Shown here piece by piece: positions 1 through 54,569 of a DNA stretch of 64,000 nt. The DNA lies in NCBI GenBank assembly GCA_021613535.1, contig CP075493.1:17980001-18044000 (forward strand). The letters run 5' to 3'. The DNA is from Adineta vaga. Lineage: Eukaryota > Animalia > Rotifera. Positions within the stretch are counted from its first letter, which is position 1, and every line of letters starts with the position of its first letter. The translations under genes and the position numbers were made by a program. The notes beneath the pieces were generated by a model. That model was not told where the DNA came from, made no database searches, and saw only the letters and a program-made list of their open reading frames with translations.

Positions 1-1229
1 TTTATAACAGTAAAAAGTAGCAATTTGACAAGTAAAAAATCCAAATTTGATTAGTAAATAATGCATGTTGTACCAACAGAAAAAAAAGATCGATCTGTAA
101 GACACACCCGAGCACGAGACGAAGAATCTAATTGAAGCCGTCTAAAATTCGAATCACTGCAGCATCAAAGCTGGTTTAGCTTTTGCTGGCCGGCCACTCT
201 TTCGTTTTTCACCGATCGGCACTGTCTTGGCTGGTGATGGTGGTCTGCAGTACTTCAAGCGAATAGCCATCCCAACAACGTGCTTGCAAACATAGTTTTT
301 CAAAAAGGCCGGGCAGTTGCATTTTGATTTCTTCCAGTCTGTATCATTCGGCATTTCTAAACACCATATATCATAGGATTTCTTGAACTGATTAAAGGTA
401 GTCCATTTTCTATTGATATATTTATTTACATCAGTTTGTGTAATATCTTGTATATCACGAGCTGGTATATAATGTTTTTGAACCATCATTCGGATAGAAG
501 ATTACATCTGTTGATGACTTGTCCATTGATATGAAGAAGTCCATAGCTTTAAACTTATCGTCGCTTCTATGACAAAAACTTTTGCATTTATTGAAGTGGA
601 ATCACGTTCTATTGACCAGTTGTGAACAATCCTTGAAGCTATTGCTAAAAATCTCGATAAGACATAACGTTCTTGGAAAGTCCCTTCATCTTTTATTGTC
701 TTGTTGGCTGTCTCCAGGATTTTGTTCGTAATCGGTGTATATAACTGGATACCTTCGTACCAACCGTTATTGGATTCAATCCATTCTTTGTCGAAATACG
801 ACAGATTTTCTTGTTTCTGGTACGTCCTCCTCTACTAAATCACTTTCGTATGAAGCACCTCGTGCAGCTTCCATCGGTTTTACTTGTTAGCACCGAGATG
901 GACGTGAAAGAAAGGATAGAAATAACGAATATGATGGCTGGATTTATAGTTGAATCTCGCGATTACAGAGAAATAAAAAAAAGTAGCCATCAGTCACTGT
1001 ACGACTTATTGCAATTTCTACAGTGATCCTTGCATATAATCTCCTAATAATGTATTTTATTTACTGATTATCAAATTAATTAACTATACAATCTCTTGAA
1101 CTACTGTTCCTTTATATTGTTTACTGACAGTTCAACTTCTTTACTGATCATTCATCCAATTAACTGATTTTGAAATATTTCATCTCACTGATCATACCAT
1201 ATTTTCTACTGATAAACTAAATCCATGCC
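1..1229 (-). mobile_element. Intronic MULE (Mutator-like) remnant with SWIM zinc-finger transposase C-terminus, truncated by the window edge
   Basis: ORF 154-489 has [14 protein letters not shown] (SWIM) and a KRKSGRP AT-hook-like tail. Same sequence as the complete copies downstream. Confidence 0.75.
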
Positions 1230-1497
1230 TAATTTAACGGGATCGAGCCGCAACAAGTTTGCTTCGATTGAAACATGAATAAGGTTCAGACAAAAAAGAA
1301 TCATGGTCCCGTCAGATCTGAATCCATCGATATCATAAACCCATACCATTGTAGTATCCACTTAACTGTATTTAACTATACGATGAATGTTGGATCAAAG
1401 GCGACAGACAATCATTTTTGCAGTGCGATCGACCATGATCATGCTTCTTCTTCTTCTTCTCATTTGTTCTTTTTCATCGTCGCCATCGTCGTCGTAG

Positions 1498-4400
1498 CAC
1501 CAGCATCCTTTGCTCAAGCTCGTATCTGGCTCGATGAACGACTTCGATTCGATCCAGACCATCCACAAGTGGCTATCTACAATATGCCTTTCGTCTATCG
1601 TCTTTCTCCACACGACACTCTCTCGATTCAACAACTTCATCATGCTCTACAACTTGTTGTCAACAAACATCCATCACTTCATACAGCACTCGTCTTTGAT
1701 TCTGACAAACATCAACTCATTCAAAGAATTCTTTCTCACAAAGATAACAACAACGACAACAGAACTCTCTTCTCCTTTACTCAAAGTACTTATGAAACAG
1801 ATGAAGAACTCCATGATATCTTACATGATGAACGAAGAAACACGCAACATTTCGATCTCGATCATGGTCTTGTCTTTCGATGTCATCTCGTACATTACAA
1901 AGAGATTATCCCATCGAATGATCTTCTTTCTCATCAACATCTTCTCATCTTTAGTTTTCATCATGCTTTGTTTGATTTTCTATCGATGAACATCTTTCTT
2001 CATGATCTCAATCAAGCATATACCACAAGTCAATTATCCACTGATGATGACTATACTACTCTTCGTTATTTCGATTGTATGTTATCCTAGCTTCTCATGT
2101 GTACTTTTCTTCTCTACCACATTTTCTTCTCTATTATATTCAGATGCTGCCATCGAACAACAACTGTCAATGACTGGTGCACAGATGTTCTGGCAGGATA
2201 CACTTCATGGTTGTCAACTCGATCAACCTCTTTCCTTACCCTATGATCGACATCGTCTTTCGAATGAACATCGAACTGGTCGTGGAACATCGATTTCCTT
2301 CGATCTTGGTCAACATCTGTCACATGACCTTGTCACTTATGCATCATCAAATCATATCGAACTAGAACATCTAGCTCTTGCAACCTACTATCTCTTCTTA
2401 TTCAAACTGACCAATGGAGAACAAGATCTATGTATTGGAATGAATACACATGGTCGATATCGAAATGAACTTCACTCAATCATTGGCATGTTTGTCAATG
2501 CTATACCAGTACGATGTCAACTAGATTCTTGTTGGTCTTTTGCTCAACTACTTGAACATATTCGATCGATGATAGTCAACTGTAGAAAATATTCATATTA
2601 TCCACTTCAACGTATTCTCTCTCAATATCCTCATCTCTCACATCCTGCATTTCTCGATACATCATTCGAATTTATCTCATCATCATCATTATCGATGGGA
2701 AAAGATGATCGAAATGAGATTATGATTGGTGATAGTCGACTTTCTCTCCTATCTTTCGTTACGAATATCAATGAAGATGAAGTGATGAACAAGTTTGATT
2801 TCATTCTCAGGATTGATCATCATCTGATGACAAATGAACTGTCATGCACCCTTTCTGCATCCAACGATTTGTTCAATGTAGAAACTATCTTCCAGATGGC
2901 ACAAAGATTTCACACAGTAGTCCAACAACTATTCATATCTGTTGATACAAGCATGAGGAAACTACTTTCTGAACAATCATTGATGTTGAACAATGAAAGA
3001 TTACTCATACAATCAATCAATCATACACAAACATCTTTTCCTCCCGTGAAGTGTATTCATCATGAGTTTGTATGTCAAGTGATAAGACATCCACAGAAAC
3101 TAGCTGTTGAACTCGATGATCAATCGTTGACATATGCTGAACTGTTGCACTATGTGCAACTATTATCGACACGTCTTCTAAGTGATTATAACATCCTTCC
3201 AGGTGAAGTGATTTGTCAATGTGTGGAGAGAAGCATATCAATGGTAAGTAGTTGATCAAAGACATGTGAATGTGAAGTAGAGATTGTTGTTGTTGTTGTT
3301 GTGTGGATGCATAGGTGATTGGAATGATGGCCATCGAAATGGTAGGTGGTGTTTATTGTCCATTATCACCTCGAGATCCTCAACATAGACTTCATGCACT
3401 CCTACAACAAACACAAGCTCGTCTAGTTCTTGTTCATTGGTTAACAGACAAGTTTCACGATGCAATGGCTTCACTTGATATTAATATCATCTCCTTTGCG
3501 AATAATATGCGTCAGGCTGTTGATGTTCATCGTTGGGATGATGTCATAGTTACTCCCAGTCATGTGGCCTATATCATTTTCACTAGTGGTTCAACTGGAA
3601 CACCCAAGGCGGTTCGTTGAATTTTAGTCAAATGACATCTATGACTGTATAATTCAATATTTCATTTCAGGTCCAAGTTCGGCATAGAAACTTCCTTGCT
3701 TGTATGCATGGTTTGAGATTGACTGATACGTTCAATACCAACGATACAGTCGTACAAATGGCACGATGTTCATTTGATGTTCATCTTCAAGAAATACTTG
3801 GTATCTTGACATGCGGAGCAACACTGGTGATGCTTCATCCTCGAGGAACTCTAGATTTAGAATATCTGTCACACATCATGCATGAGAAACAAATCACATA
3901 CCTGCATGCGGTGCCAACTTTACTCCAGAGTTTCTTCACTTTTCTCGAAAGCTCTCACATTTGTTATGTGGTGAAGTATGTTAGATCACTGTGCTGTGGC
4001 GGTGAGTGCCGAATGAATCACGTTTCTTGCTAGCTCCATTTAACTTGTTAATTCTCTGTAGGCGAACCTTTTCTCGTTCGATTCATTCACTTGGTCAATA
4101 GTGTCTGTATATCAAACTGTCTAATCTGGAACCTTTATGGTCCAGCAGAAATGACTATAGATTCTACACTTTTTCGTATAGATGTTATATCAAAACCTGC
4201 TGCTATCGCAATCGGGAAACCGCTTCCTGGCTACCAATGTATGATTCTGCATCCATATTCACAGGCATCTTTGATAAATGAAGAAGGTGAACTGTGCGTA
4301 GGAGGCGTAGGTGTGTTTGTTGGATATCTTGGACGAGATGATCTCACAGCCAAGGCACTCATCGAAATTGATGGTGAACTATTCTATCGAACAGGTGACC

Positions 4401-6660
4401 TCGTTCGAATGGATCATCAAGGTTTTCTTCATTACATTGGTCGACAAGATCATCAAGTCAAACTTCGAGGACAACGTATCGAACTAGGTGAGATCGAACA
4501 ATGTCTACTCAACATAGCATCATCCATCTCTGCATGTGTTGTCATCAAATGGAATGGTGATCATCTCGTGGCTTATGTTCAATGTTCTCATAACATACAC
4601 GAACAGCAACTGAGAGAACATTGTCAATCTCATCTTCCACCACATATGATTCCATCGTTCTTCGTCATCCTCGAACAACTACCTCTGAATGTCAATGGAA
4701 AGATCGATCGAAAACGGCTTCCTTCACCCGATGTCTCGCATCTGTCTTCATCAGCACATCATACGAATGACGACAATAATGAATTCTCACAACCAACCAA
4801 TGACATCGAACAGATCATTCATGACATGTGGTGTGATATTCTTCATCAAAAACAGATCTCCATCAGCACCAGTCTTTTCACCATCGGTGGTCATTCTCTC
4901 CTAGTCATGCAACTCTTTCATCGATACAAGATCGACTTTCATCTAGAATCGAGTTCTTCCTTTTCCATCTCTACTTTTTTTCAACATCCAACCATCAAAG
5001 AACATGCTCATCTCATTCATCAGACTCGCAACATCCACACCGAAGATGTCGATCATCATCAATGGCTCCCACTACATGTCACTCGAGGTAGTTTACATCA
5101 TGTATTTGTCTTCATCATCCACTCCCTTTTCTGTTTGTGTTCTAGCAAGAGCATCCTATGCACAGGAACGTATCTTCTTAGATGAACACATTCGTTTCTC
5201 CTCATCCACAAATACCACCCATTATCGTATTCATCATAATATCTATGTCATTCCATTATTGTATCGTCTCTCATCTTCTCATTCTCATCTTTCAATCTCA
5301 AGACTACGTTATGCACTGCATAGTCTCATCATCAGACACAACACTCTTCGAACAGCACTCTACCTAGATGATGTCGATGGTAGTATTGTACAAGAATGCT
5401 TCGATCAATCTCGCATTAGCAATGATATGATATCATGTCGATTTATTGTTCTTGATCTTCACAACAATAACGATAAGGATTGCGAGCGACAGGAGATTGT
5501 CGAGGATATACTCAATCAAGTGGATCTCTTTGATCTATCTAAAGGACATGTCATCAATTGTCATCTTCTTCTCGGACATCATCCTTCTCCAGAGGATGAT
5601 GATTTGTTGAATGAAAACGATTGGATCTTATTTACTCTCCATCATGCAGCATTTGATGGAGCATCCACATCGATCTTTCTTCGTGATCTTGCTCTTGCTT
5701 ATGATCAAGATGAGAACTTCTTGGTTGAGACTAATGCATTGCAATACATCGACTATTCTGTACATGAACATTGCATGGATATGACATTATCTCGACAATT
5801 CTGGCATGATCAACTGCAAGGATATGATCTGCAAAGTCGACTAGCATTGCCGGTTGATCGACATCGTGCTTCAGCTGATCAGCGCTCTGGACTGGCGTCA
5901 TCTATTCAAGTGACACTCGATGATGACATATGTACATCCTTTCTTCACTATGCATCATCACATCATCTCACTCTCTTTCAACTTGGCTTAGCTACATTCT
6001 ATGCATTTCTCTTTCGACTAACTCATGGTCACAGTGATCTATGTGTATCTTCGATTAATGCTAATCGATATCGAAATGAACTTGTCAATATGATAGGCAT
6101 GTTTGTGTCAACATTACCATATCGTCTTCACATCGATGATCATCAATGGTCCTTTGGTGAACTTGTCCGACATGTGCAAGAGAAATGTGTATCTATTCTA
6201 GAACATTCTCATTATCCATTACAAGAACTCTTCTCTCACTTTCATGTCAATCAATCGAATGTTGGATTTCTCGAAACGGTGTTTGATCTAATACATGTGT
6301 CTCCTGAACAAACACAGTTATCTTTGGGTGAAACAAACTTAGAACAAATATCATCAGACATATCATATCGAATGGCGAAATTTGATATCATGTTCACATT
6401 GGTTTATGATCGAACATGGCATGATGAGCGATTATCATGCAGTTTTGTCTGTTCACAAGATTTGTTTGATCAGGCATCCGTTACACTTCTAAGTCAAAGA
6501 CTAGTACACTTCTATCGGCAGCTGTTCTTATCTGATGGCGGTGGTGGTAGAATGGAGAGTTGGTCATTACCTTTATGTGATCTAGTTCTCATTCTACCGG
6601 AAGAAGCTAGAGAAATAGAAGACATTGTGTTTTGTCCACAACTACATGTGATAGATGAAG
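1498..6660 (+). CDS. NRPS unit 1 (C1-A-T-C2); exons 1498-2076, 2144-3243, 3315-3611, 3671-4001, 4062-5087, 5146-6660
   Basis: GT-AG introns of 58-71 nt restore split motifs (RYFD|YAA, TPKA|VQV, CCG|GE). Spliced length is 4848 nt = 1616 codons. A-domain code read by eye against GrsA numbering: DVQHCGLIDK. Confidence 0.9.
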
Positions 6661-9600
6661 GTATGTGTGATTGTTCGATGACTTTTGTTCAAATATGCAC
6701 ATGGATATCGGAGAAGATGCGAACTGTCTGTAGAGAAGTGTGCGAATATGTAAGAATCAACATGATACTTGAGAATGACATCTGATAAATGCTAAGAAAA
6801 CGATGATATTAATAGATTATTTGTAGAAACTTTGCTGTCTAGCGGTTTAGCAGTAATTGGACTATTTCCTCAGTTGAGTGTTGTAGAGTGACGAGCAGTT
6901 TTTACTTCTGAAACATTTTCTTTCGTATTAAGTGTAATTCATGAGAGTTTCTCTTGTCCTTTCTACTTATGCACATAAGTATAGGCTAAACATATTTCAC
7001 AAGTGTATTCGTAAGAGGAAGACTGTCTGAAATGTTTCTGTCGTCGGCTACAAGATGCTATGCGTTTGGATGAGTGTCCCTCAGTGTGAATGGGGTTACA
7101 CGCATGGAATAGACCCAGTTCGTATTTTGATGCGTTCTAGCAGGGAATTCGATTCGTTTTGCGCTTCTCTTCATGCATACAGAGGAGAACTAGTCGGTAG
7201 TTTTATCTACCTTCCTGGCTTTGTTTTCTGGTAAGAAGCGGAAATGATTTTGATCAGAGACAGAACTACTTATTATAAGATTACAAAAAACTACACATTA
7301 ATCGCAAAACCATGATAAAAATAGTCATCTACAAACGGTACAGTGTGATTCGATGAAAGCTGGTATTATATAGTGAACTGAAATAAGAAGACAGGCCAGA
7401 GACTATCTGCGTAGTGTGATGGATTAAAAGAGCGAATTGAAAAACAAAAGAAGGATATCGAGCACCAAGGATGAAAAGCCACATCTATATAGGTGATAGC
7501 AACAAGTATCTTAATATACACATTTCAGTGTAAGATGTGTTGATCATAAGTCATATGATTGTTTTGTTTCCTTGCTATCCTCAACTAAATACTTCATTGT
7601 TCCACACGCGCATTTTCCTGGATCTTTGTCTTTGTTTTCTTTCTTTCTCATTTCTATGTACACCAGTACAAACACACCTGTTCACCTCCAATCGACAATC
7701 CCTCTTCCACTTGAGCGACTAGTCTAAGACATGACATCGAACCGACAGAACATACAACATTAGAATAAAAACTTCCATCACGGAAGTTCCATGTGGCAGC
7801 TTCCTACCAACCAATCATACAATGAAAACACAAGCGAAATTCAGTTAGATACCGTCTGATTCGACACATCAGCATGAAAATATTGTGAAGTAAACTGAGA
7901 AGCAAGTAGAATTGAACGAGATCACAGTGGGTTTCATTCTTGAAAATCAGAATCGTCGGCAACACAAATGCCAAGGAATAATTTATCGGGAACAAATTTA
8001 TTGACCGGTTAAACAGATGAAATGATCAGTAATAAAATGGATAAATGATCAGTTCGAAGTTTGAATGATCGGTGCTTAGAATAGCAGTAAATAATATGAA
8101 AATGATCAGTCTATAATATGAACCATCCGTAAAGACATCATATTTATAACAGTAAAAAGTAGCAATTTGACAAGTAAAAAATCCAAATTTGATTAGTAAA
8201 TAATGCATGTTGTACCAACAGAAAAAAAAGATCGATCTGTAAGACACACCCGAGCACGAGACGAAGAATCTAATTGAAGCCGTCTAAAATTCGAATCACT
8301 GCAGCATCAAAGCTGGTTTAGCTTTTGCTGGCCGGCCACTCTTTCGTTTTTCACCGATCGGCACTGTCTTGGCTGGTGATGGTGGTCTGCAGTACTTCAA
8401 GCGAATAGCCATCCCAACAACGTGCTTGCAAACATAGTTTTTCAAAAAGGCCGGGCAGTTGCATTTTGATTTCTTCCAGTCTGTATCATTCGGCATTTCT
8501 AAACACCATATATCATAGGATTTCTTGAACTGATTAAAGGTAGTCCATTTTCTATTGATATATTTATTTACATCAGTTTGTGTAATATCTTGTATATCAC
8601 GAGCTGGTATATAATGTTTTTGAACCATCATTCGGATAGAAGATTACATCTGTTGATGACTTGTCCATTGATATGAAGAAGTCCATAGCTTTAAACTTAT
8701 CGTCGCTTCTATGACAAAAACTTTTGCATTTATTGAAGTGGAATCACGTTCTATTGACCAGTTGTGAACAATCCTTGAAGCTATTGCTAAAAATCTCGAT
8801 AAGACATAACGTTCTTGGAAAGTCCCTTCATCTTTTATTGTCTTGTTGGCTGTCTCCAGGATTTTGTTCGTAATCGGTGTATATAACTGGATACCTTCGT
8901 ACCAACCGTTATTGGATTCAATCCATTCTTTGTCGAAATACGACAGATTTTCTTGTTTCTGGTACGTCCTCCTCTACTAAATCACTTTCGTATGAAGCAC
9001 CTCGTGCAGCTTCCATCGGTTTTACTTGTTAGCACCGAGATGGACGTGAAAGAAAGGATAGAAATAACGAATATGATGGCTGGATTTATAGTTGAATCTC
9101 GCGATTACAGAGAAATAAAAAAAAGTAGCCATCAGTCACTGTACGACTTATTGCAATTTCTACAGTGATCCTTGCATATAATCTCCTAATAATGTATTTT
9201 ATTTACTGATTATCAAATTAATTAACTATACAATCTCTTGAACTACTGTTCCTTTATATTGTTTACTGACAGTTCAACTTCTTTACTGATCATTCATCCA
9301 ATTAACTGATTTTGAAATATTTCATCTCACTGATCATACCATATTTTTCTACTGATAAACTAAATCCATGCCTAATTTAACGGGATCGAGCCGCAACAAG
9401 TTTGCTTCGATTGAAACATGAATAAGGTTCAGACAAAAAAGAATCATGGTCCCGTCAGATCTGAATCCATCGATATCATAAACCCATACCATTGTAGTAT
9501 CCACTTAACTGTATTTAACTATACGATGAATGTTGGATCAAAGGCGACAGACAATCATTTTTGCAGTGCGATCGACCATGATCATGCTTCTTCTTCTTCT

Positions 9601-12600
9601 TCTTCTTCTCATTTGTTCTTTTTCATCGTCGCCATCGTCGTCGTAGCACCAGCATCCTTTGCTCAAGCTCGTATCTGGCTCGATGAACGACTTCGATTCG
9701 ATCCAGACCATCCACAAGTGGCTATCTACAATATGCCTTTCGTCTATCGTCTTTCTCCACACGACACTCTCTCGATTCAACAACTTCATCATGCTCTACA
9801 ACTTGTTGTCAACAAACATCCATCACTTCATACAGCACTCGTCTTTGATTCTGACAAACATCAACTCATTCAAAGAATTCTTTCTCACAAAGATAACAAC
9901 AACGACAACAGAACTCTCTTCTCCTTTACTCAAAGTACTTATGAAACAGATGAAGAACTCCATGATATCTTACATGATGAACGAAGAAACACGCAACATT
10001 TCGATCTCGATCATGGTCTTGTCTTTCGATGTCATCTCGTACATTACAAAGAGATTATCCCATCGAATGATCTTCTTTCTCATCAACATCTTCTCATCTT
10101 TAGTTTTCATCATGCTTTGTTTGATTTTCTATCGATGAACATCTTTCTTCATGATCTCAATCAAGCATATACCACAAGTCAATTATCCACTGATGATGAC
10201 TATACTACTCTTCGTTATTTCGATTGTATGTTATCCTAGCTTCTCATGTGTACTTTTCTTCTCTACCACATTTTCTTCTCTATTATATTCAGATGCTGCC
10301 ATCGAACAACAACTGTCAATGACTGGTGCACAGATGTTCTGGCAGGATACACTTCATGGTTGTCAACTCGATCAACCTCTTTCCTTACCCTATGATCGAC
10401 ATCGTCTTTCGAATGAACATCGAACTGGTCGTGGAACATCGATTTCCTTCGATCTTGGTCAACATCTGTCACATGACCTTGTCACTTATGCATCATCAAA
10501 TCATATCGAACTAGAACATCTAGCTCTTGCAACCTACTATCTCTTCTTATTCAAACTGACCAATGGAGAACAAGATCTATGTATTGGAATGAATACACAT
10601 GGTCGATATCGAAATGAACTTCACTCAATCATTGGCATGTTTGTCAATGCTATACCAGTACGATGTCAACTAGATTCTTGTTGGTCTTTTGCTCAACTAC
10701 TTGAACATATTCGATCGATGATAGTCAACTGTAGAAAATATTCATATTATCCACTTCAACGTATTCTCTCTCAATATCCTCATCTCTCACATCCTGCATT
10801 TCTCGATACATCATTCGAATTTATCTCATCATCATCATTATCGATGGGAAAAGATGATCGAAATGAGATTATGATTGGTGATAGTCGACTTTCTCTCCTA
10901 TCTTTCGTTACGAATATCAATGAAGATGAAGTGATGAACAAGTTTGATTTCATTCTCAGGATTGATCATCATCTGATGACAAATGAACTGTCATGCACCC
11001 TTTCTGCATCCAACGATTTGTTCAATGTAGAAACTATCTTCCAGATGGCACAAAGATTTCACACAGTAGTCCAACAACTATTCATATCTGTTGATACAAG
11101 CATGAGGAAACTACTTTCTGAACAATCATTGATGTTGAACAATGAAAGATTACTCATACAATCAATCAATCATACACAAACATCTTTTCCTCCCGTGAAG
11201 TGTATTCATCATGAGTTTGTATGTCAAGTGATAAGACATCCACAGAAACTAGCTGTTGAACTCGATGATCAATCGTTGACATATGCTGAACTGTTGCACT
11301 ATGTGCAACTATTATCGACACGTCTTCTAAGTGATTATAACATCCTTCCAGGTGAAGTGATTTGTCAATGTGTGGAGAGAAGCATATCAATGGTAAGTAG
11401 TTGATCAAAGACATGTGAATGTGAAGTAGAGATTGTTGTTGTTGTTGTTGTGGATGCATAGGTGATTGGAATGATGGCCATCGAAATGGTAGGTGGTGTT
11501 TATTGTCCATTATCACCTCGAGATCCTCAACATAGACTTCATGCACTCCTACAACAAACACAAGCTCGTCTAGTTCTTGTTCATTGGTTAACAGCAGACA
11601 AGTTTCACGATGCAATGGCTTCACTTGATATTAATATCATCTCCTTTGCGAATAATATGCGTCAGGCTGTTGATGTTCATCGTTGGGATGATGTCATAGT
11701 TACTCCCAGTCATGTGGCCTATATCATTTTCACTAGTGGTTCAACTGGAACACCCAAGGCGGTTCGTTGAATTTTAGTCAAATGACATCTATGACTGTAT
11801 AATTCAATATTTCATTTCAGGTCCAAGTTCGGCATAGAAACTTCCTTGCTTGTATGCATGGTTTGAGATTGACTGATACGTTCAATACCAACGATACAGT
11901 CGTACAAATGGCACGATGTTCATTCGATATCCATGTTCAAGAAATACTTGGTATCTTGACATGCGGAGCAACACTGGTAATGCTTCATCCTCGAGGAACT
12001 CTAGATTTAGAATATCTGTCACACATCATGCATGAGAAACAAATCACATACCTGCATGCGGTGCCAACTTTACTCCAGAGTTTCTTCGCTTTTCTCGGAC
12101 ATTCTAACGTTTGCTCTGTTCTTCAAGGTCTTCGATCACTGTGTAGTAGCGGTGGGTGAATGATAGTAAAAGTTGAGTTGCTTATTTATAGCCTATAACA
12201 TTTTGTTGCAGGTGAACCGTTTCCTCTTAGACTTGCTGACTTGGTCAAAAATGTCGGGATATCAAACTGTAATGTGTGGAATCTATACGGTCCGGCGGAG
12301 ATCACTATTGATTGTACCTTGTTTCATGCAGACGTTATTTCGAAACCTGCTGCTATCGCAATCGGGAAACCGCTTCCTGGCTACCAATGTATGATTCTGC
12401 ATCCATATTCACAGGCATCTTTGATAAATGAAGAAGGTGAACTGTGCGTAGGAGGCGTAGGTGTGTTTGTTGGATATCTTGGACGAGATGATCTCACAGC
12501 CAAGGCACTCATCGAAATTGATGGTGAACTATTCTATCGAACAGGTGACCTCGTTCGAATGGATCATCAAGGTTTTCTTCATTACATTGGTCGACAAGAT

Positions 12601-33600: not shown

Positions 33601-36600
33601 GTCATGTGGCCTATATCATTTTCACTAGTGGTTCAACTGGAACACCCAAGGCGGTTTGTTGAGTTACAGTGAAGTGGCATTTGTGCTCAGTTGTTTCGTT
33701 TCTCATTCTAGATACAAGTTCGACATACGAACTTTGTTAACTGTATGCATTCGTTGACATTCAATGGCACATTTTATGAAAATGATACGGCTATACAGAT
33801 GGCACGATGTTCATTTGACATTCATGTTCAAGAAATACTTGGTATCTTGACATATGGTGCCACCCTGGTGATGCTTCATCCTCGAGGAACTCTAGATTTA
33901 GAATATCTGTCACACATCATGCATGAGAAACAAATCACATACCTGCATGCGGTGCCAACTTTACTCCAGAGTCTGTTCGCCTTTCTCGATCGCTCACACA
34001 GCTCTTATGTCGTGAAGTATCTTCGATCAGTATGCAGTAGTGGTGAGCGGCTGATTAAATAATTTCAGTTCTATTCTGACATTCAATATCTGATCTATTA
34101 CAGGTGAACCTTTCCCGGTGAAATTGACCGATCTCATAGCAAAAGCTAGTACAGCAAACTGTAATGTATGGAATTTATATGGGCCAGCAGAAATAACTAT
34201 CGGTTGTACGCTCTTTCTTGTTAAAGCTACATCAAAGACTGATACAGTTCCGATCGGACAGTCACTTCCTAATTATGAATGTGTGGTTCTGGATGAACAT
34301 TCGCAAACGTCTTTGACAAATCAAGAAGGTGAATTGTTTGTCGGAGGTGTAGGTGTATTTGCTGGATATCTTGGACGTGATGATCTGACTGCCAGGGCAC
34401 TCATCGAAGTTAATGGTCGGTTATTCTATAGAACAGGTGATATCGTTCGAATAGATGACAGTGGATTGATTCATTACATTGGTCGACAAGATCATCAAGT
34501 CAAACTTCGAGGACAACGCATTGAACTTGGTGAAATCGAACGATGCCTGCTCAGCATCTCTACCATCTCTGCTTGTGTTGTCATCAAATGGAATGATGAT
34601 CATCTCGTGGCTTATGTTCAATGTTCTCATAACATACACGAACAGCAACTGAGAGAACATTGTCAATCTCATCTTCCACCACATATGATTCCATCGTTCT
34701 TCGTCATCCTCGAACAACTACCTCTGAATGTCAATGGAAAGATCGATCGAAAACGGCTTCCTTCACCCGATGTCTCGCATCTGTCTTCATCAGCACATCA
34801 TACGAATGACGACAATAATGAATTCTCACAACCAACCAATGACATCGAACAGATCATTCATGACATGTGGTGTGATATTCTTCATCAAAAACAGATCTCC
34901 ATCAGCACCAGTCTTTTCACCATCGGTGGTCATTCTCTCCTAGTCATGCAACTCTTTCATCGATACAAGATCGACTTTCATCTAGAATCGAGTTCTTCCT
35001 TTTCCATCTCTACTTTTTTTCAACATCCAACCATCAAAGAACATGCTCATCTCATTCATCAGACTCGCAACATCCACACCGAAGATGTCGATCATCATCA
35101 ATGGCTCCCACTACATGTCACTCGAGGTAGTTTACATCATGTATTTGTCTTCATCATCCACTCCCTTTTCTGTTTGTGTTCTAGCAAGAGCATCCTATGC
35201 ACAGGAACGTATCTTCTTAGATGAACACATTCGTTTCTCCTCATCCACAAATACCACCCATTATCGTATTCATCATAATATCTATGTCATTCCATTATTG
35301 TATCGTCTCTCATCTTCTCATTCTCATCTTTCAATCTCAAGACTACGTTATGCACTGCATAGTCTCATCATCAGACACAACACTCTTCGAACAGCACTCT
35401 ACCTAGATGATGTCGATGGTAGTATTGTACAAGAATGCTTCGATCAATCTCGCATTAGCAATGATATGATATCATGTCGATTTATTGTTCTTGATCTTCA
35501 CAACAATAACGATAAGGATTGCGAGCGACAGGAGATTGTCGAGGATATACTCAATCAAGTGGATCTCTTTGATCTATCTAAAGGACATGTCATCAATTGT
35601 CATCTTCTTCTCGGACATCATCCTTCTCCAGAGGATGATGATTTGTTGAATGAAAACGATTGGATCTTATTTACTCTCCATCATGCAGCATTTGATGGAG
35701 CATCCACATCGATCTTTCTTCGTGATCTTGCTCTTGCTTATGATCAAGATGAGAACTTCTTGGTTGAGACTAATGCATTGCAATACATCGACTATTCTGT
35801 ACATGAACATTGCATGGATATGACATTATCTCGACAATTCTGGCATGATCAACTGCAAGGATATGATCTGCAAAGTCGACTAGCATTGCCGGTTGATCGA
35901 CATCGTGCTTCAGCTGATCAGCGCTCTGGACTGGCGTCATCTATTCAAGTGACACTCGATGATGACATATGTACATCCTTTCTTCACTATGCATCATCAC
36001 ATCATCTCACTCTCTTTCAACTTGGCTTAGCTACATTCTATGCATTTCTCTTTCGACTAACTCATGGTCACAGTGATCTATGTGTATCTTCGATTAATGC
36101 TAATCGATATCGAAATGAACTTGTCAATATGATAGGCATGTTTGTGTCAACATTACCATATCGTCTTCACATCGATGATCATCAATGGTCCTTTGGTGAA
36201 CTTGTCCGACATGTGCAAGAGAAATGTGTATCTATTCTAGAACATTCTCATTATCCATTACAAGAACTCTTCTCTCACTTTCATGTCAATCAATCGAATG
36301 TTGGATTTCTCGAAACGGTGTTTGATCTAATACATGTGTCTCCTGAACAAACACAGTTATCTTTGGGTGAAACAAACTTAGAACAAATATCATCAGACAT
36401 ATCATATCGAATGGCGAAATTTGATATCATGTTCACATTGGTTTATGATCGAACATGGCATGATGAGCGATTATCATGCAGTTTTGTCTGTTCACAAGAT
36501 TTGTTTGATCAGGCATCCGTTACACTTCTAAGTCAAAGACTAGTACACTTCTATCGGCAGCTGTTCTTATCTGATGGCGGTGGTGGTAGAATGGAGAGTT

Positions 36601-39600
36601 GGTCATTACCTTTATGTGATCTAGTTCTCATTCTACCGGAAGAAGCTAGAGAAATAGAAGACATTGTGTTTTGTCCACAACTACATGTGATAGATGAAGG
36701 TATGTGTGATTGTTCGATGACTTTTGTTCAAATATGCACATGGATATCGGAGAAGATGCGAACTGTCTGTAGAGAAGTGTGCGAATATGTAAGAATCAAC
36801 ATGATACTTGAGAATGACATCTGATAAATGCTAAGAAAACGATGATATTAATAGATTATTTGTAGAAACTTTGCTGTCTAGCGGTTTAGCAGTAATTGGA
36901 CTATTTCCTCAGTTGAGTGTTGTAGAGTGACGAGCAGTTTTTACTTCTGAAACATTTTCTTTCGTATTAAGTGTAATTCATGAGAGTTTCTCTTGTCCTT
37001 TCTACTTATGCACATAAGTATAGGCTAAACATATTTCACAAGTGTATTCGTAAGAGGAAGACTGTCTGAAATGTTTCTGTCGTCGGCTACAAGATGCTAT
37101 GCGTTTGGATGAGTGTCCCTCAGTGTGAATGGGGTTACACGCATGGAATAGACCCAGTTCGTATTTTGATGCGTTCTAGCAGGGAATTCGATTCGTTTTG
37201 CGCTTCTCTTCATGCATACAGAGGAGAACTAGTCGGTAGTTTTATCTACCTTCCTGGCTTTGTTTTCTGGTAAGAAGCGGAAATGATTTTGATCAGAGAC
37301 AGAACTACTTATTATAAGATTACAAAAAACTACACATTAATCGCAAAACCATGATAAAAATAGTCATCTACAAACGGTACAGTGTGATTCGATGAAAGCT
37401 GGTATTATATAGTGAACTGAAATAAGAAGACAGGCCAGAGACTATCTGCGTAGTGTGATGGATTAAAAGAGCGAATTGAAAAACAAAAGAAGGATATCGA
37501 GCACCAAGGATGAAAAGCCACATCTATATAGGTGATAGCAACAAGTATCTTAATATACACATTTCAGTGTAAGATGTGTTGATCATAAGTCATATGATTG
37601 TTTTGTTTCCTTGCTATCCTCAACTAAATACTTCATTGTTCCACACGCGCATTTTCCTGGATCTTTGTCTTTGTTTTCTTTCTTTCTCATTTCTATGTAC
37701 ACCAGTACAAACACACCTGTTCACCTCCAATCGACAATCCCTCTTCCACTTGAGCGACTAGTCTAAGACATGACATCGAACCGACAGAACATACAACATT
37801 AGAATAAAAACTTCCATCACGGAAGTTCCATGTGGCAGCTTCCTACCAACCAATCATACAATGAAAACACAAGCGAAATTCAGTTAGATACCGTCTGATT
37901 CGACACATCAGCATGAAAATATTGTGAAGTAAACTGAGAAGCAAGTAGAATTGAACGAGATCACAGTGGGTTTCATTCTTGAAAATCAGAATCGTCGGCA
38001 ACACAAATGCCAAGGAATAATTTATCGGGAACAAATTTATTGACCGGTTAAACAGATGAAATGATCAGTAATAAAATGGATAAATGATCAGTTCGAAGTT
38101 TGAATGATCGGTGCTTAGAATAGCAGTAAATAATATGAAAATGATCAGTCTATAATATGAACCATCCGTAAAGACATCATATTTATAACAGTAAAAAGTA
38201 GCAATTTGACAAGTAAAAAATCCAAATTTGATTAGTAAATAATGCATGTTGTACCAACAGAAAAAAAAGATCGATCTGTAAGACACACCCGAGCACGAGA
38301 CGAAGAATCTAATTGAAGCCGTCTAAAATTCGAATCACTGCAGCATCAAAGCTGGTTTAGCTTTTGCTGGCCGGCCACTCTTTCGTTTTTCACCGATCGG
38401 CACTGTCTTGGCTGGTGATGGTGGTCTGCAGTACTTCAAGCGAATAGCCATCCCAACAACGTGCTTGCAAACATAGTTTTTCAAAAAGGCCGGGCAGTTG
38501 CATTTTGATTTCTTCCAGTCTGTATCATTCGGCATTTCTAAACACCATATATCATAGGATTTCTTGAACTGATTAAAGGTAGTCCATTTTCTATTGATAT
38601 ATTTATTTACATCAGTTTGTGTAATATCTTGTATATCACGAGCTGGTATATAATGTTTTTGAACCATCATTCGGATAGAAGATTACATCTGTTGATGACT
38701 TGTCCATTGATATGAAGAAGTCCATAGCTTTAAACTTATCGTCGCTTCTATGACAAAAACTTTTGCATTTATTGAAGTGGAATCACGTTCTATTGACCAG
38801 TTGTGAACAATCCTTGAAGCTATTGCTAAAAATCTCGATAAGACATAACGTTCTTGGAAAGTCCCTTCATCTTTTATTGTCTTGTTGGCTGTCTCCAGGA
38901 TTTTGTTCGTAATCGGTGTATATAACTGGATACCTTCGTACCAACCGTTATTGGATTCAATCCATTCTTTGTCGAAATACGACAGATTTTCTTGTTTCTG
39001 GTACGTCCTCCTCTACTAAATCACTTTCGTATGAAGCACCTCGTGCAGCTTCCATCGGTTTTACTTGTTAGCACCGAGATGGACGTGAAAGAAAGGATAG
39101 AAATAACGAATATGATGGCTGGATTTATAGTTGAATCTCGCGATTACAGAGAAATAAAAAAAAGTAGCCATCAGTCACTGTACGACTTATTGCAATTTCT
39201 ACAGTGATCCTTGCATATAATCTCCTAATAATGTATTTTATTTACTGATTATCAAATTAATTAACTATACAATCTCTTGAACTACTGTTCCTTTATATTG
39301 TTTACTGACAGTTCAACTTCTTTACTGATCATTCATCCAATTAACTGATTTTGAAATATTTCATCTCACTGATCATACCATATTTTCTACTGATAAACTA
39401 AATCCATGCCTAATTTAACGGGATCGAGCCGCAACAAGTTTGCTTCGATTGAAACATGAATAAGGTTCAGACAAAAAAGAATCATGGTCCCGTCAGATCT
39501 GAATCCATCGATATCATAAACCCATACCATTGTAGTATCCACTTAACTGTATTTAACTATACGATGAATGTTGGATCAAAGGCGACAGACAATCATTTTT

Positions 39601-42600
39601 GCAGTGCGATCGACCATGATCATGCTTCTTCTTCTTCTTCTTCTTCTCATTTGTTCTTTTTCATCGTCGCCATCGTCGTCGTAGCACCAGCATCCTTTGC
39701 TCAAGCTCGTATCTGGCTCGATGAACGACTTCGATTCGATCCAGACCATCCACAAGTGGCTATCTACAATATGCCTTTCGTCTATCGTCTTTCTCCACAC
39801 GACACTCTCTCGATTCAACAACTTCATCATGCTCTACAACTTGTTGTCAACAAACATCCATCACTTCATACAGCACTCGTCTTTGATTCTGACAAACATC
39901 AACTCATTCAAAGAATTCTTTCTCACAAAGATAACAACAACGACAACAGAACTCTCTTCTCCTTTACTCAAAGTACTTATGAAACAGATGAAGAACTCCA
40001 TGATATCTTACATGATGAACGAAGAAACACGCAACATTTCGATCTCGATCATGGTCTTGTCTTTCGATGTCATCTCGTACATTACAAAGAGATTATCCCA
40101 TCGAATGATCTTCTTTCTCATCAACATCTTCTCATCTTTAGTTTTCATCATGCTTTGTTTGATTTTCTATCGATGAACATCTTTCTTCATGATCTCAATC
40201 AAGCATATACCACAAGTCAATTATCCACTGATGATGACTATACTACTCTTCGTTATTTCGATTGTATGTTATCCTAGCTTCTCATGTGTACTTTTCTTCT
40301 CTACCACATTTTCTTCTCTATTATATTCAGATGCTGCCATCGAACAACAACTGTCAATGACTGGTGCACAGATGTTCTGGCAGGATACACTTCATGGTTG
40401 TCAACTCGATCAACCTCTTTCCTTACCCTATGATCGACATCGTCTTTCGAATGAACATCGAACTGGTCGTGGAACATCGATTTCCTTCGATCTTGGTCAA
40501 CATCTGTCACATGACCTTGTCACTTATGCATCATCAAATCATATCGAACTAGAACATCTAGCTCTTGCAACCTACTATCTCTTCTTATTCAAACTGACCA
40601 ATGGAGAACAAGATCTATGTATTGGAATGAATACACATGGTCGATATCGAAATGAACTTCACTCAATCATTGGCATGTTTGTCAATGCTATACCAGTACG
40701 ATGTCAACTAGATTCTTGTTGGTCTTTTGCTCAACTACTTGAACATATTCGATCGATGATAGTCAACTGTAGAAAATATTCATATTATCCACTTCAACGT
40801 ATTCTCTCTCAATATCCTCATCTCTCACATCCTGCATTTCTCGATACATCATTCGAATTTATCTCATCATCATCATTATCGATGGGAAAAGATGATCGAA
40901 ATGAGATTATGATTGGTGATAGTCGACTTTCTCTCCTATCTTTCGTTACGAATATCAATGAAGATGAAGTGATGAACAAGTTTGATTTCATTCTCAGGAT
41001 TGATCATCATCTGATGACAAATGAACTGTCATGCACCCTTTCTGCATCCAACGATTTGTTCAATGTAGAAACTATCTTCCAGATGGCACAAAGATTTCAC
41101 ACAGTAGTCCAACAACTATTCATATCTGTTGATACAAGCATGAGGAAACTACTTTCTGAACAATCATTGATGTTGAACAATGAAAGATTACTCATACAAT
41201 CAATCAATCATACACAAACATCTTTTCCTCCCGTGAAGTGTATTCATCATGAGTTTGTATGTCAAGTGATAAGACATCCACAGAAACTAGCTGTTGAACT
41301 CGATGATCAATCGTTGACATATGCTGAACTGTTGCACTATGTGCAACTATTATCGACACGTCTTCTAAGTGATTATAACATCCTTCCAGGTGAAGTGATT
41401 TGTCAATGTGTGGAGAGAAGCATATCAATGGTAAGTAGTTGATCAAAGACATGTGAATGTGAAGTAGAGATTGTTGTTGTTGTTGTTGTGGATGCATAGG
41501 TGATTGGAATGATGGCCATCGAAATGGTAGGTGGTGTTTATTGTCCATTATCACCTCGAGATCCTCAACATAGACTTCATGCACTCCTACAACAAACACA
41601 AGCTCGTCTAGTTCTTGTTCATTGGTTAACAGCAGACAAGTTTCACGATGCAATGGCTTCACTTGATATTAATATCATCTCCTTTGCGAATAATATGCGT
41701 CAGGCTGTTGATGTTCATCGTTGGGATGATGTCATAGTTACTCCCAGTCATGTGGCCTATATCATTTTCACTAGTGGTTCAACGGGAACGCCTAAAGCAG
41801 TATGTCACCGGATCCGATCATTAAATCAATTCTCTCATTATAATCGTTTTTTGTTAGATTCTAGTAACACATTCGAATCTGATGACCTTTACTCAATCGT
41901 TGGTTCAAATTCAGATTCTTCATCGTAATGATAATGTTGTACAGCTCGCTTCTTCGTCATTTGATGCCCATATACTGGAAATTCTTTGTTCTCTGGTTTG
42001 CGGAGCAGCAGTGATTATGCTGCATCCAGATGGGAATATGAATTTTGGCTATTTTACTGAGACACTGCGAGACAAGGAAGTCACACATTTGACAGCTGTT
42101 CCAACGTTTCTCGACCATTTGTGTAAATTTATCCAGCAGAATATGTCTAGATTGTTTACATTAATAAGAAATGTTTGTTGTGTTGGTGAGTAACCGGAGA
42201 GTATGTGAAACAATTTGAGATCACATCCGTCTTGTATATAGGAGAGACCCTCTCGCCGATCTTAGTTCTGACTTTGATGCATCACATCATGGAACCTTGT
42301 TGTATTTGGAACTTATATGGTCCAGCAGAGGCTACACTAGGAAGCACATATTATCTGTTTGATCCGACTTATAATACAGCTAACGTATCTATTGGTAAAC
42401 CCTTTCCTGGTTACATATGTTTACTGGTGGATCATTTCTTACAACCTGTTGCAGTCTATCAAGAAGGTGAATTGTATGTAGGAGGAGTAGGTATCTTTGC
42501 CGGATATCTTGGACGCGATGATCTCACAGCCAAAGCACTAATTGATATTGATGGTGAAGTCTTCTATCGAACAGGTGATCTCGTTCGAATGGATGACAGT

Positions 42601-44111
42601 GGATTGATTCATTACATTGGTCGACAAGATCATCAAGTCAAACTTCGAGGACAACGCATTGAACTTGGTGAAATCGAACGATGCCTGCTCAGCATCTCTA
42701 CCATCTCTGCTTGTGTTGTCATCAAATGGAATGATGATCATCTCGTGGCTTATGTTCAATGTTCTCATAGTATACATGAACAGCAACTGAGAGAACATTG
42801 TCAATCTCATCTTCCACCACATATGATTCCATCGTTCTTCGTCATCCTCGAACAACTACCTCTGAATGTCAATGGAAAGATCGATCGAAAGCGTCTTCCT
42901 GTACCTCAGTTTTCATTATCGACTTCTTTAGCATTGGATGCTTTGTTAGCGCCTAAAACGCGTTTAGAACAATCTGTAGAAGGTGTTTGGCGTCAAATTC
43001 TCCAATGTGATGAAAAGTTTATATCCACAACCGCAAACTTCTTTGACGTTGGTGGCTATTCACTTCTCTTCATTCAACTGTATTATCGCTATCAGTCGTT
43101 GTTTGGTTTTGGTGCCCATTTACCTGCAATTGCTCTTTTTTCTTCAACAACCAACCATTCAACAACATGCACAGTTGCTTGAAAATAGGCTTCTATCCAA
43201 GGATATGTACGTTAAACGATGGCACGCATCAGATACAGAGCAAGGTAGGACATTTTTGATCAGAAAAAAGCAACGAAACTGATCGCTCTTTTGGTTTCAC
43301 CTTGAGACGTTGCTGTTTCCGCTCGTGCTCCTTTCTTTTTTGATGAGGAAGCTTGTTGTCCGCATGAATTTGCCGTCTGTTTAGATGATTTTGAGCATCC
43401 GTTTGTTTTATTCAATGAAAATGCCGATAATATTTTGTTCATTTTGCCGCCTGGTGAAGGTGGTGCCGAAAGCTACTTTAACAACATTGTGCCTCATTTA
43501 TCGCGATTTAGACTAGTAATATTCAACAATTACTATATGGATCTTAAAAGAAAAAATATGGGAAACGATCTGTCGTTTGAAACATTAGCTCCTGTGTATA
43601 CATAAAGTATATAAAGCAGATTCAACACAACGGTCCGTATAACTTTCTAGGCTGGAGTTTTGGTGGCATCTTGTCTTTTGAAATTTCTCGCCAGTTAAAC
43701 AATGCTGGCGAGAAAATTCGTAATGTCTTTATGATCGACTCATACTTTAATTTGATGAAGGCTTTGTGTGACATTGGCAACACAGATAAGATGGAAGTGT
43801 ATGTTACTGATCAAATACAAGGCACCTATCTACCGATAGTAAACAATGAACCATTTGGATTAAGTTTGCCCAATAGAACAACGAACATTGTATTGTTCAA
43901 AGCCAACAAGGTAGATGAACGCTTTACATCAGACGATTACCTGAAATTAAGCGAATACTATTGCAATTCATCATTTAATAATCTTGACACAATAGTGAAT
44001 CATGAATACATTCAAGTATTTCAAATGTATGACGATAGCCATGAGTCTTGGAAATTTAATAAAGAGCAAATTGTCCACATGTGCGATTATGTAACAAGTT
44101 TATTAAAATAA
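1498..44111 (+). CDS. Giant intron-containing multimodular NRPS, 5'-incomplete: [C1-A-T-C2]x5 + C1-A-T-TE, roughly 9,400 aa within the window
   Basis: Core motifs recur in every unit: [16 protein letters not shown], HHxxx[15 protein letters not shown] (A3), SFD (A4), NLYGPAE (A5), GELxVGGVG (A6), YRTGD (A7), [20 protein letters not shown] (A8), LPPHMIP (A9), NGKIDR (A10), GGHSLL (T), and GWSFG (TE) at the end. Each C2 exon ends GAA G|gtatgt and each next C1 exon starts cgtag|CA CCA GCA, giving an in-frame ...E-APASFAQ join. The only natural stop is at 44109-44111, followed by AATAAA. Four 1-2 nt frameshifts interrupt the reading as assembled. Confidence 0.88.
7988..9372 (-). mobile_element. 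Internally deleted MULE element in NRPS inter-unit intron
   Basis: SWIM ORF 8296-8631. 9-bp TSD TAATTTATC/TAATTTAAC. Degenerate TIRs with (A)TGATCAGT and ACTGATCA subterminal repeats. The homologous site at about 24970-24990 lacks the insertion. Confidence 0.8.
9647..14809 (+). CDS. NRPS unit 2 (C1-A-T-C2); exons 9647-10225, 10293-11392, 11462-11761, 11821-12151, 12212-13237, 13296-14809
   Basis: Near-identical to unit 1 except around the A pocket and intron 4. Code DIQHCSLIDK. A 1-nt deletion (GG to G) at about 13773 frameshifts C2. Confidence 0.88.
16137..17521 (-). mobile_element. MULE remnant, co-duplicated copy
   Basis: Near-identical to 7988-9372 with the same flanks; SWIM ORF 16445-16750. 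Confidence 0.8.
17796..22882 (+). CDS. NRPS unit 3 (C1-A-T-C2 with divergent A core, T and C2)
   Basis: Same intron positions (exon 4 19969-20296, exon 5 20353-21354, exon 6 21419-22882). Code DALTCVLLGK, T motif LGGHSLL, C2 motif HHAAFDR. Confidence 0.88.
23479..24033. repeat. Foldback inverted repeat (about 245-bp arms, about 65-bp spacer) in the unit 3/4 intron
   Basis: 23479-23722 is the reverse complement of about 23788-24033 with few mismatches. This explains the mirror ORFs 23587-23832(-) and 23680-23925(+). Confidence 0.9.
24289..24501. mobile_element. Small CACTG-terminus MITE with TA target duplication
   Basis: TA|CACTGTAAAA...TTTTAACAGGG|TA, with an internal inverted pair GAATTTGCAACGTATAA / TTATACGTTGCAGATTC. 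Confidence 0.55.
25250..30409 (+). CDS. NRPS unit 4 (C1-A-T-C2)
   Basis: C1, T and C2 match units 1/2, while the A core is unique from about 27190. Code DTQDIGSIGK. An extra AT at about 29837-29840 frameshifts C2. Confidence 0.88.
30650..31260 (-). mobile_element. Older, diverged MULE-related fragment in the unit 4/5 intron
   Basis: Shares CCATTCTTTGTCGAAATA, GATGGACGTGAAAG and TACTGAT repeats with the 1.4-kb MULE. Boundaries approximate. Confidence 0.5.
31517..36699 (+). CDS. NRPS unit 5 (divergent mosaic C1, A, T, C2)
   Basis: Same exon layout. C1 motif HRALFDF, code DIQHCSLIGK. T and C2 match unit 1, and the C2 exon is intact. Confidence 0.88.
38027..39410 (-). mobile_element. MULE remnant, co-duplicated copy
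   Basis: Near-identical to 7988-9372 with the same flanks; SWIM ORF 38335-38670. Confidence 0.8.
39685..43244 (+). CDS. NRPS terminal unit 6 (C1-A-T)
   Basis: C1-A essentially identical to unit 3 (code DALTCVLLGK). Unique T domain with VGGYSLL. An extra T in the run at about 43136-43141 shifts the frame. Donor CAA G|gtagga at 43244/43245. Confidence 0.85.
43307..44111 (+). CDS. Terminal exon: ACV-synthetase (PcbAB)-type thioesterase domain
   Basis: Manual translation gives [19 protein letters not shown]...FNNYY...[27 protein letters not shown]...IDSYFN...IVLFKA...DDSHESW. Catalytic Ser codon at 43656-43658. An extra TA at about 43597-43600 shifts the frame. The acceptor at 43306 is inferred. 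Confidence 0.88.
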
Positions 44112-44122
44112 ATCACCAAGAG

Positions 44123-44128
44123 AATAAA
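44123..44128 (+). promoter_or_regulatory. Probable polyadenylation signal of the NRPS gene
   Basis: AATAAA 12 nt after the TE stop codon. Confidence 0.5.
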
Positions 44129-52021: not shown

Positions 52022-52073
52022 TGTAATCGTTTGAATAAGTTGAGATTAAATAATGTAATAAATAAGTGCGAAC

Positions 52074-52281
52074 TAATATGAAAACAACTTGATCTATATA
52101 ACTAGGATATAAACCAAATTGCTAAACCCAACTTTTGCTTTTCAGCAATCGATTCAAAGTCAAAAAGTAACTTGATAAATTAATGGATAGATGTTTGAAA
52201 ATGATATATAATATAATAAATGCAGAGTTTAGCTTTGCCGACGCGTTTCGTACCTTTACAAAGGTAGTACTCTTCAGGGCT
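52074..52281 (-). repeat. pLTR copy upstream of ORF1
   Basis: Direct repeat of 47816-47991 plus hammerhead. Confidence 0.9.
52237..52280 (-). ncRNA. Minimal type I hammerhead ribozyme
   Basis: GCC-CTGAAGA-GTAC...GTAC-GAAA-CGCG-TC-GGC. Confidence 0.88.
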
Positions 52282-52448
52282 GTACTAATATATCTGAAAG
52301 AGAAAAAGAAAGAAAGAATGAATGAACGAAAAAATGAATGAATGAATGAATGAATGATATGTTTATAGCTTGATTAAATGAAAGTAAGAAAAAGAACATC
52401 TATGAGTTCAGATTGTTAACTTAAATTGTATAGTTTATCTTTGATTTG

Positions 52449-53114: not shown

Positions 53115-53159
53115 ATTTTAACTGAACAGGGAAAAATGTGAAACAGATGAAAGTATAAT

Positions 53160-54547: not shown

Positions 54548-54569
54548 TGAAGAATTTGTAGTAGATATC

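Follow-up and report, generated by a model that had tools for sequence, protein, structure and literature searches.

Multimodular nonribosomal peptide synthetases (NRPSs) are very rare among animals, and bdelloid rotifers, in which an earlier survey had found them to be abundant, are the outstanding exception ('Nonribosomal Peptide Synthetases in Animals', 2023; Nowell et al. 2024, Nat Commun 15:5787, PMC11258130). A tandem array of NRPS-like open reading frames (ORFs) near the end of chromosome 1 of Adineta vaga Av20 raises the question of whether such an array is one gene or a row of separate ones, and whether the encoded enzyme is intact. The array lies in a stretch of 64,000 nucleotides (CP075493.1, 17980001-18044000, + strand), referred to below as the window; coordinates are window positions unless stated otherwise. 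An initial annotation, made from the sequence alone, had proposed one spliced multi-module NRPS gene, and this proposal was supported by the domain content, by introns shared among the units and by a junction between units that was found spliced in RNA-like contigs. As a whole, the data are best explained if one NRPS gene, acquired horizontally and bearing introns, contributes its modules 4-9 and its thioesterase to the window, which we consider the probable reading. Both the locus, as Cluster 1.9, and an estimate of its size have already appeared in the literature, and the central claim of the annotation was thus right, yet known.

Domain content and exon plan

Self-BLAST of the window revealed a tandem array with a period of ~8.14 kb between position 1 and ~43,200, with copies up to 99-100% identical. 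Six NRPS units (U1-U6) were delimited in 1498-44111 on the + strand (Table 1). All profile and database searches were run exon by exon, and exons were joined only arithmetically, for phase checks. Pfam searches of the ORF fragments returned Condensation, AMP-binding, AMP-binding_C and PP-binding domains, which recur in the order C1-A-T-C2 (C, condensation; A, adenylation; T, carrier), the last unit lacking C2. The C domains matched PF00668, and their HHxxxDG motif reads HHAAFDG in C2. The A domains matched PF00501 and PF13193 and contain the core motifs A3, A5 and A10, including NGKIDRK, and the carriers matched PF00550 with the attachment sites GGHS, GGNS and GGYS. The terminal thioesterase (PF00975 at 43623-44108, 46.5 bits) has PDB thioesterase matches and the GxSxG nucleophile in the form GWSFGG, is broken in frame at 43594-43595 in the assembly, and is unique in the genome searched (Av20, six contigs, 100.8 Mb). 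The same genome holds two PF01648 (PPTase) loci.

In its domains, core motifs and colinear logic the array resembles bacterial multimodular NRPSs such as those of tyrocidine, teixobactin (Txo1/Txo2) and linear gramicidin. The best PDB matches of both C types were C domains of synthetases of these types, and the thioesterase matched NRPS type I thioesterases. Unlike these enzymes, the A. vaga gene has spliceosomal introns and two C-type domains per elongation module, and it resides on an animal chromosome.

Every unit is interrupted at the same codon positions by five GT-AG introns of 55-71 nt in phases 1, 0, 0, 1 and 1. In U1, the six exons start in phases 1, 1, 0, 0, 1 and 1 and total 4848 coding nt. 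The intron 4 acceptors of U3 and U6 were placed by hand (20296/20353 and 42185/42242), which restored the GGE-type motif and the shared intron position. The units themselves are separated by longer introns, and all five inter-unit junctions (6660/9647, 14809/17796, 22882/25250, 30409/31517 and 36699/39685) have an AAG/gtatgt donor and a tag/CACCAGC acceptor in phase 1. When every unit is taken to begin in phase 1, U1, U3 and U5 read open from end to end and finish in phase 1, so that each C2 exon is compatible in frame with the C1 exon that follows. The coding part within the window amounts to ~9,440 aa.

The initial annotation had read the ORF fragments as exons of six units with identical intron positions, linked by long phase-1 introns at these five junctions, and had placed a single thioesterase, stop codon and poly(A) signal at the end of the array and a further copy of the inter-unit intron at the opening of the window. 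The splice sites, phases and domain annotation bear out each of these points. Its proposal that C2 is joined in frame to the next C1 holds for the phases, which fit everywhere, yet four frame breaks in the window had been missed.

Splicing of the inter-unit introns

Read-derived contigs were compared over the region 29600-35590. Three runs, X1 and X3 (from one 2024 study) and X5 (from another study, 2013), were labelled RNA by guess, and the label is supported by the lack of introns there and by their presence in X7, a DNA run of 2013. In X1, X3 and X5 the depth over the inter-unit intron was zero and contigs ran across the joint 30409/31517 with GT..AG ends, whereas this joint was lacking in X7, whose contig continues into the intron. 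A single 2.3-kb X3 contig leads from the last part of the A-T exon through the complete C2 exon into the beginning of a C1 exon. On the acceptor side of the junction contigs, 28 of 201 letters differ from U5 and match the common C1, so that the contigs prove only the junction type of 6660/9647, 14809/17796 and 36699/39685. The RNA-like contigs thus show that the gene is transcribed and that the inter-unit intron of this type is spliced.

All five intra-unit introns were also removed in the RNA-like contigs. Those of U5 were spliced at 32104/32167, 33653/33712, 34042/34104 and 35126/35185 in both studies, and the junction between the second and third of the six exons of a unit (E1-E6) was seen in its common type as a 9-letter overhang.

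We considered whether each unit could be a separate gene whose C1-A-T-C2 protein acts in trans. The long introns are ~50 times longer than the other introns, and a unit both starts and finishes with a C domain. However, in contigs of three RNA-like runs from two studies (X1, X3 and X5) the C2 exon runs directly into the following C1 exon, with GT..AG at the joint, the 2.3-kb contig spans T, C2 and C1 exons, there is neither a stop at the end of C2 nor a start codon context at C1, and the same phase-1 junction encloses an intron of only 290 nt in a paralogous cluster. On the strength of the junction contigs we rejected separate unit genes, which we regard as extremely improbable.

The E1-E6 exon series of the present gene recurs in the paralogous Cluster 2.4 (chromosome 2) and in a homoeologous cluster at the very end of chromosome 5, with exon amino acid identities of 46-62% and 48-79%, respectively, and inter-exon gaps of 50-70 nt. 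In both, C2 and C1 are connected by the same ATGAAG/gt ... tag/CACCAGC phase-1 junction, the 290-nt intron being one such case. The exon plan and the phase-1 inter-unit intron are common to these clusters and must therefore predate them. The unique part of the short U4 to U5 intron is 78% identical to the counterpart intron of the chromosome 5 homoeolog. We also observed that this homoeolog (16900001-16930519) begins with the same heterocyclisation module as the gene described here, followed by the same units, and that its assembly ends in the middle of an A-T exon.

Layout of the whole gene and predicted product

The expectation that at least one more unit lies upstream of the window was borne out by U0, which is of the same kind as the window units, and by two further modules. 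The exon series starts ~19 kb upstream of the window (at ~1053 of the upstream stretch L002) with a C domain reduced to its C-terminal half, after which come A and T, and no NRPS exon was found within 60 kb further upstream of this gene start. An exon of 1863 aa (L002:2949-8540) then encodes the end of the module 1 A domain, a T domain, a heterocyclisation (Cy) domain, a complete A domain and a second T domain. In the Cy domain, DLLILDLWS takes the place of HHxxxDG and follows the pattern DxxxxDxxS. The module 2 A domain contains an insert of ~450 aa with oxidase (Ox) motifs, and its specificity code reads DLYNLSLIWK, which we take to be the canonical Cys code. For the specificity codes, the FD, P, GGE-type, NxYGPTE-type and GK motifs served as anchors, which gives an approximate readout (Table 1).

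Thiazole-forming Cy-A(Ox)-T modules are known from NRPSs of the epothilone EpoB and bleomycin type. Module 2 of the A. vaga gene shares with them the DxxxxDxxS motif, the Cys code and an FMN-oxidase insert that separates the A core from the C-terminal subdomain of A, and on these features it belongs to this class. It differs in that its Ox matches (SagB family, E 1e-10; Nitroreductase, E 0.07) fall below the curated cut-offs and in that it sits in one 5.6-kb intron-free exon of an intron-rich gene.

The gene thus comprises nine modules, namely ΔC-A-T, Cy-A(Cys,Ox)-T and seven elongation units, followed by the thioesterase. An assembly line of roughly 9,400 aa or more for six or more residues had been proposed from the window; the figure agrees with the coding part counted there, but the gene is larger, at ~13,900 aa. 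The exon sum over the whole gene, ~13,950 aa, equals the published 13,683 aa plus a thioesterase of ~266 aa that is absent from the catalogue.

Read in gene order, the truncated C remnant with A-T would serve as loading module, and the Cy-A(Cys, FMN oxidase insert)-T module would then make a thiazole. Seven elongation units would follow, each in the arrangement T-C2, long intron, C1-A, before the single thioesterase. By NRPS colinearity, the predicted product is a peptide of nine residues, with position 2 occupied by a thiazole, which may be released or cyclised by the thioesterase.

Frame breaks

As assembled, the gene contains five frame-breaking indels, four in the window and one in U0 (Table 1). 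In the thioesterase, positions 2-53 of PF00975 match in one frame and 63-103 in the next, and the nine intervening residues are encoded as well, but shifted by two bases. The PP-binding match of U6 halts at profile position 37 of 67; that of U3 covers positions 3-66. With regard to a continuous polypeptide, the phases fit at all junctions and a junction is spliced in RNA-like contigs, and of the five breaks one was checked against reads.

If the indels were real, the locus would be a transcribed but decaying pseudogene in which translation stops in U0 and no nonapeptide is made. Five frame-breaking indels within ~42 kb of coding sequence, of which two fall in unique sequence, argue for decay, as do the frameshifts that the published catalogue lists for Cluster 1.9 and the low contig depths in the RNA-like runs. 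However, the four 6.9-kb blocks shared between units (27 kb) differ from each other by 1 substitution versus 5 indels, all of the latter in short runs, which is the error profile of a long-read consensus and the reverse of that of mutation. The only indel checked, the extra TA at 29835-29836, was left out of every read-derived contig, X7 DNA included (word depth 135). No exon has a nonsense substitution, and there is no stop codon besides those resulting from the indels. The A cores, moreover, are under purifying selection (see below). Nowell et al. (2024, PMC11258130) likewise suspected that frameshift-type defects may come from assembly problems. From the indel-heavy differences, the absence of the TA, the lack of nonsense codons and this suspicion, we infer that the five reference indels are mostly long-read assembly errors and that the gene of the animal is intact; a decaying pseudogene appears unlikely, although it deserves serious consideration.

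Several observations nevertheless weigh against a single intact gene. The breaks at 43136-43141 and 43594-43595 are the two that sit in unique sequence, where short-read polishing should work. Because contigs lose minority variants, they could conceal a genuine indel carried by only one of the five copies. The RNA label of X1, X3 and X5 is itself only a guess, and by their low contig depths expression looks weak. The junction contigs cannot be assigned to one unit pair, and 22882/25250 and 30409/31517 were not individually shown.

Identical blocks around diverged adenylation cores

Sequence 1498-3299 of U1 is identical in U2, U3, U4 and U6, and also in U0 barring an indel and the first few bases of the unit. 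Likewise, U0, U2, U4 and U5 match 4558-6660 of U1 exactly except for the indels. The A core that lies between (~3,400-4,560, U1 coordinates) is 30-90% identical between units. The shared blocks extend over 6.9 kb, from A9 via T, C2, the long intron and C1 to A2, and four of them are practically identical. U5 is the only unit with a C1 outside this homogenisation (57-96% identity to the others), C2 of U3 is divergent (44% amino acid identity to the common C2), and U3 and U6 have identical A cores. We rejected a transposon insertion as the source of the long intron, whose only copies are four practically identical ones, all in this gene, plus fragments in the two shorter introns.

Between A cores, dS was 0.17-1.09 and dN/dS 0.2-0.5. 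By these values the cores are old and constrained by purifying selection, which supports long-term function. A recent import of A cores from other clusters was rejected, as a genome search found no potential donor above 71% identity outside this gene.

Old, constrained cores within practically identical flanks rule out duplication followed by even divergence. Growth by tandem duplication after intron gain, as envisaged in the initial annotation, is therefore only part of the history, given the age of the exon plan and the identical blocks around diverged cores. Most simply, gene conversion or unequal exchange would have homogenised the flanks while the A specificity cores remained distinct. 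Recombination of A-domain cores is known in bacterial NRPS evolution, where variable specificity cores likewise lie within conserved flanks. In A. vaga, by contrast, the flanks are practically identical over 6.9 kb, including a 3-kb intron, within one animal gene.

Polishing with multi-mapped reads could inflate the identity of the blocks. The array might also be real but wrong in copy number or order in the reference, its 6.9-kb repeats having been mis-joined or homogenised by polishing. Four practically identical blocks of this length are difficult to assemble and polish, and Nowell et al. (2024, PMC11258130) advised caution about subtelomeric assembly. In addition, X7 has no contig of at least 97% likeness over 30553-31399, the unique part of the U4 to U5 intron, and follows long-intron sequence after 30552; this gap could be a filter hole, or the 2013 reads could differ from the Av20 assembly. 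Against an error in copy number, the word depth in X7 was 116-136 on blocks assembled five times versus 29-34 on U5-unique sequence, and this ratio of ~4-4.7 times in independent 2013 DNA agrees with five assembled copies. The variable A cores that anchor the individual units are furthermore unique in the genome, or two-copy in the case of U3 and U6. We therefore consider a wrong copy number or order improbable.

Two condensation domains at each elongation step

In all seven elongation modules, two C-type domains stand between every T and the next A (T-C-C-A). Each of the two starts with an SxAQxR motif and has C-type core motifs. The upstream domain, C2, starts with SYAQERIFL and contains the C-type motifs numbered C1-C6, and its HHAAFDG active site has canonical forms in paralogues too. 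In the C1 domain, the active site reads HHxxFD followed by F or L, as in HHALFDF, and in U5 it reads HRALFDF, the second His being lost. Given the canonical HHxxxDG in C2 versus the altered motif in C1, we favour, with modest confidence, a role of C2 as the working condensation catalyst, and C1 may be auxiliary or structural.

We also considered C2 as an epimerisation (E) domain and rejected it, since the motifs are of C type and the carriers are of the GGHS rather than the GGDSI type. No PDB match was named as an E domain, the named matches of C2 being C-domain-containing synthetases, and no E-specific NCBIfam model matched.

Two adjacent C-type domains also occur in the icosalide synthetase, in which, according to section 5.4.3 of PMC10510592, a single in-line starter C at one module adds a fatty acid. 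The icosalide pair is confined to that single module, whereas the A. vaga pair is found at all seven elongation modules and across paralogous clusters. Besides this in-line starter C, the parts of the literature consulted gave no precedent for tandem C domains. Tentatively, the T-C2-C1-A arrangement could be a bdelloid NRPS innovation with a divided labour of the C domains, combined with blocks kept alike by gene conversion around old, selected A cores; we offer this as a possibility rather than a probability. The pair is split by the inter-unit intron; if this reading were true, every elongation step would draw on such a pair, and the gene would be a natural scaffold for swapping specificity cores in an asexual animal.

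Relation to the published catalogue

In Supplementary Data 9 of Nowell et al. (2024, PMC11258130), the locus is region1.9 (Chrom_1 17942949..18035224, +), with an estimated 13683 aa, 3 frameshifts and 'Heterocyclization' in an upstream exon. The published fragments of coding sequence match the window ORFs (e.g. 18022205-18023182 is window 42205-43182), so this is the same locus. The entry gives only ORF fragments and a length; it lacks the thioesterase and an exon-intron model, gives neither inter-unit splice junctions nor frame-break positions, and lists neither the mosaic of identical blocks and variable cores nor the T-C-C-A layout; it counts 3 frame breaks where we found 5. Our splice evidence, frame-break map, mosaic and T-C-C-A layout are modest additions to it. 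To Cluster 1.9 they contribute an explicit exon-intron model and transcript evidence for the splicing of inter-module introns of 1-3 kb. The exact positions of the frame breaks and the argument for assembly errors matter for anyone expressing the gene or predicting its product, and enzymologists may find of interest the double C domain at each elongation step and the identical blocks round diverged specificity cores.

About 40 such bdelloid clusters, mostly subtelomeric, have been described, in a clade separate from bacterial and fungal sequences (Nowell et al. 2024, PMC11258130). The present array belongs among them: it is listed in the Av20 inventory, it has GT-AG introns, its nearest relatives are bdelloid, and the window is subtelomeric, starting ~165 kb and finishing ~100 kb from the end of the 18.15-Mb chromosome 1. 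Among the best 120 of the 5316 matches of the A-T exon, the best named proteins came from Adineta steineri, A. ricciae and Rotaria (55-66% identity), and within these 120 no relative exceeded 66% identity and none came from A. vaga itself. The product of the C2 ORF, looked up by exact match among read-derived assemblies, had no entry there.

The 5316 matches of the A-T exon are database 'proteins' with E values of at most 1e-20. Of these, the top 120 are exon-sized (~280-520 aa) and 55-66% identical, and stem from other bdelloids and from many JGI/ENA metagenome contigs. Bdelloid NRPS exons have thus probably been called as proteins in environmental metagenomes.

Feature list and neighbouring sequence

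Table 1. Features of the NRPS gene in window coordinates (negative values lie upstream of the window) and specificity codes of its A domains
Feature	Position	Strand	Specificity code	Evidence or remark
Module 1			DVRSCGMIDK	
Module 2			DLYNLSLIWK	
Unit U0	-6646..-1482	+	DIQHCILIGK	upstream sequence
Frame break, U0	-4957 (genome 17975043)			1-bp deletion
Long inter-unit intron U0 to U1, 3' part	1..1497	+		99% identical to 8143-9646
Unit U1, C1-A-T-C2, fully open	1498..6660	+	DVQHCGLIDK	Pfam, phases, splice sites
U1 exons	1498-2076, 2144-3243, 3315-3611, 3671-4001, 4062-5087, 5146-6660	+		
Long inter-unit intron U1 to U2, phase 1, 2986 nt	6661..9646	+		splice sites
Unit U2, exon plan as U1	9647..14809	+	DIQHCSLIDK	frame broken in C2 exon
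Frame break, U2 C2 exon	13773			1-bp deletion
Unit U3, fully open, C2 divergent	17796..22882	+	DALTCVLLGK	exon phases, comparison
Inter-unit intron U3 to U4, 2367 nt	22883..25249	+		splice sites
Unit U4	25250..30409	+	DTQDIGSIGK	frame broken in C2 exon
Frame break, U4 C2 exon	29835-29836			extra TA
Inter-unit intron U4 to U5, short form, 1107 nt	30410..31516	+		splice sites
Unit U5, fully open, C1 divergent	31517..36699	+	DIQHCSLIGK	
U5 exons	31517-32104, 32167-33290, 33354-33653, 33712-34042, 34104-35126, 35185-36699	+		
Long inter-unit intron U5 to U6, 2985 nt	36700..39684	+		splice sites
Unit U6, C1-A-T without C2	39685..43244	+	DALTCVLLGK	
U6 exons	39685-40263, 40331-41430, 41500-41799, 41858-42185, 42242-43244	+		
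Frame break, U6 T domain	43136-43141			T6 run, T5 needed; U6 versus U3 comparison, cut-off PP-binding match
Intron before thioesterase, 62 nt	43245-43306	+		
Terminal thioesterase and stop	43307..44111	+		PF00975, GWSFGG nucleophile elbow
Frame break, thioesterase	43594-43595			extra GT; PF00975 profile in two frames
Stop codon	44109-44111	+		
Poly(A) signals	44107..44128	+		one AATAAA overlapping the stop, second at 44123

Further features were noted in and around the gene. Within the U3 to U4 intron lies a palindrome (23479-24033) with 245-nt arms that are 96% complementary and a 65-nt loop, single-copy in the genome. Upstream of the gene start (L002:1-600 and L003:7365-8700), short mirrored ORFs and inverted repeats adjoin the first NRPS exon, and reverse-transcriptase-like fragments occur further up. 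Just downstream of the NRPS stop codon, a 666-bp inverted repeat (44161-44826 / 45826-46491, 99.85% identical, arms ~1 kb apart) has mirrored ORFs and looks like a foldback element or one of the terminal-inverted-repeat type.

On the minus strand, 48168-63938 is a low-GC block (26-30%) of long intron-free ORFs with a weak RVT_1 match (E 3.9e-6) and an OTU-like protease match (E 3.3e-7). Within this block, which is probably a large retroelement, 53612-54309 and 60459-61151 are 66% alike. At 56890-57221, a 14-nt unit (CGACATAGCAGCTA) is repeated in tandem in ~24 copies with higher-order periods of 71 and 85.

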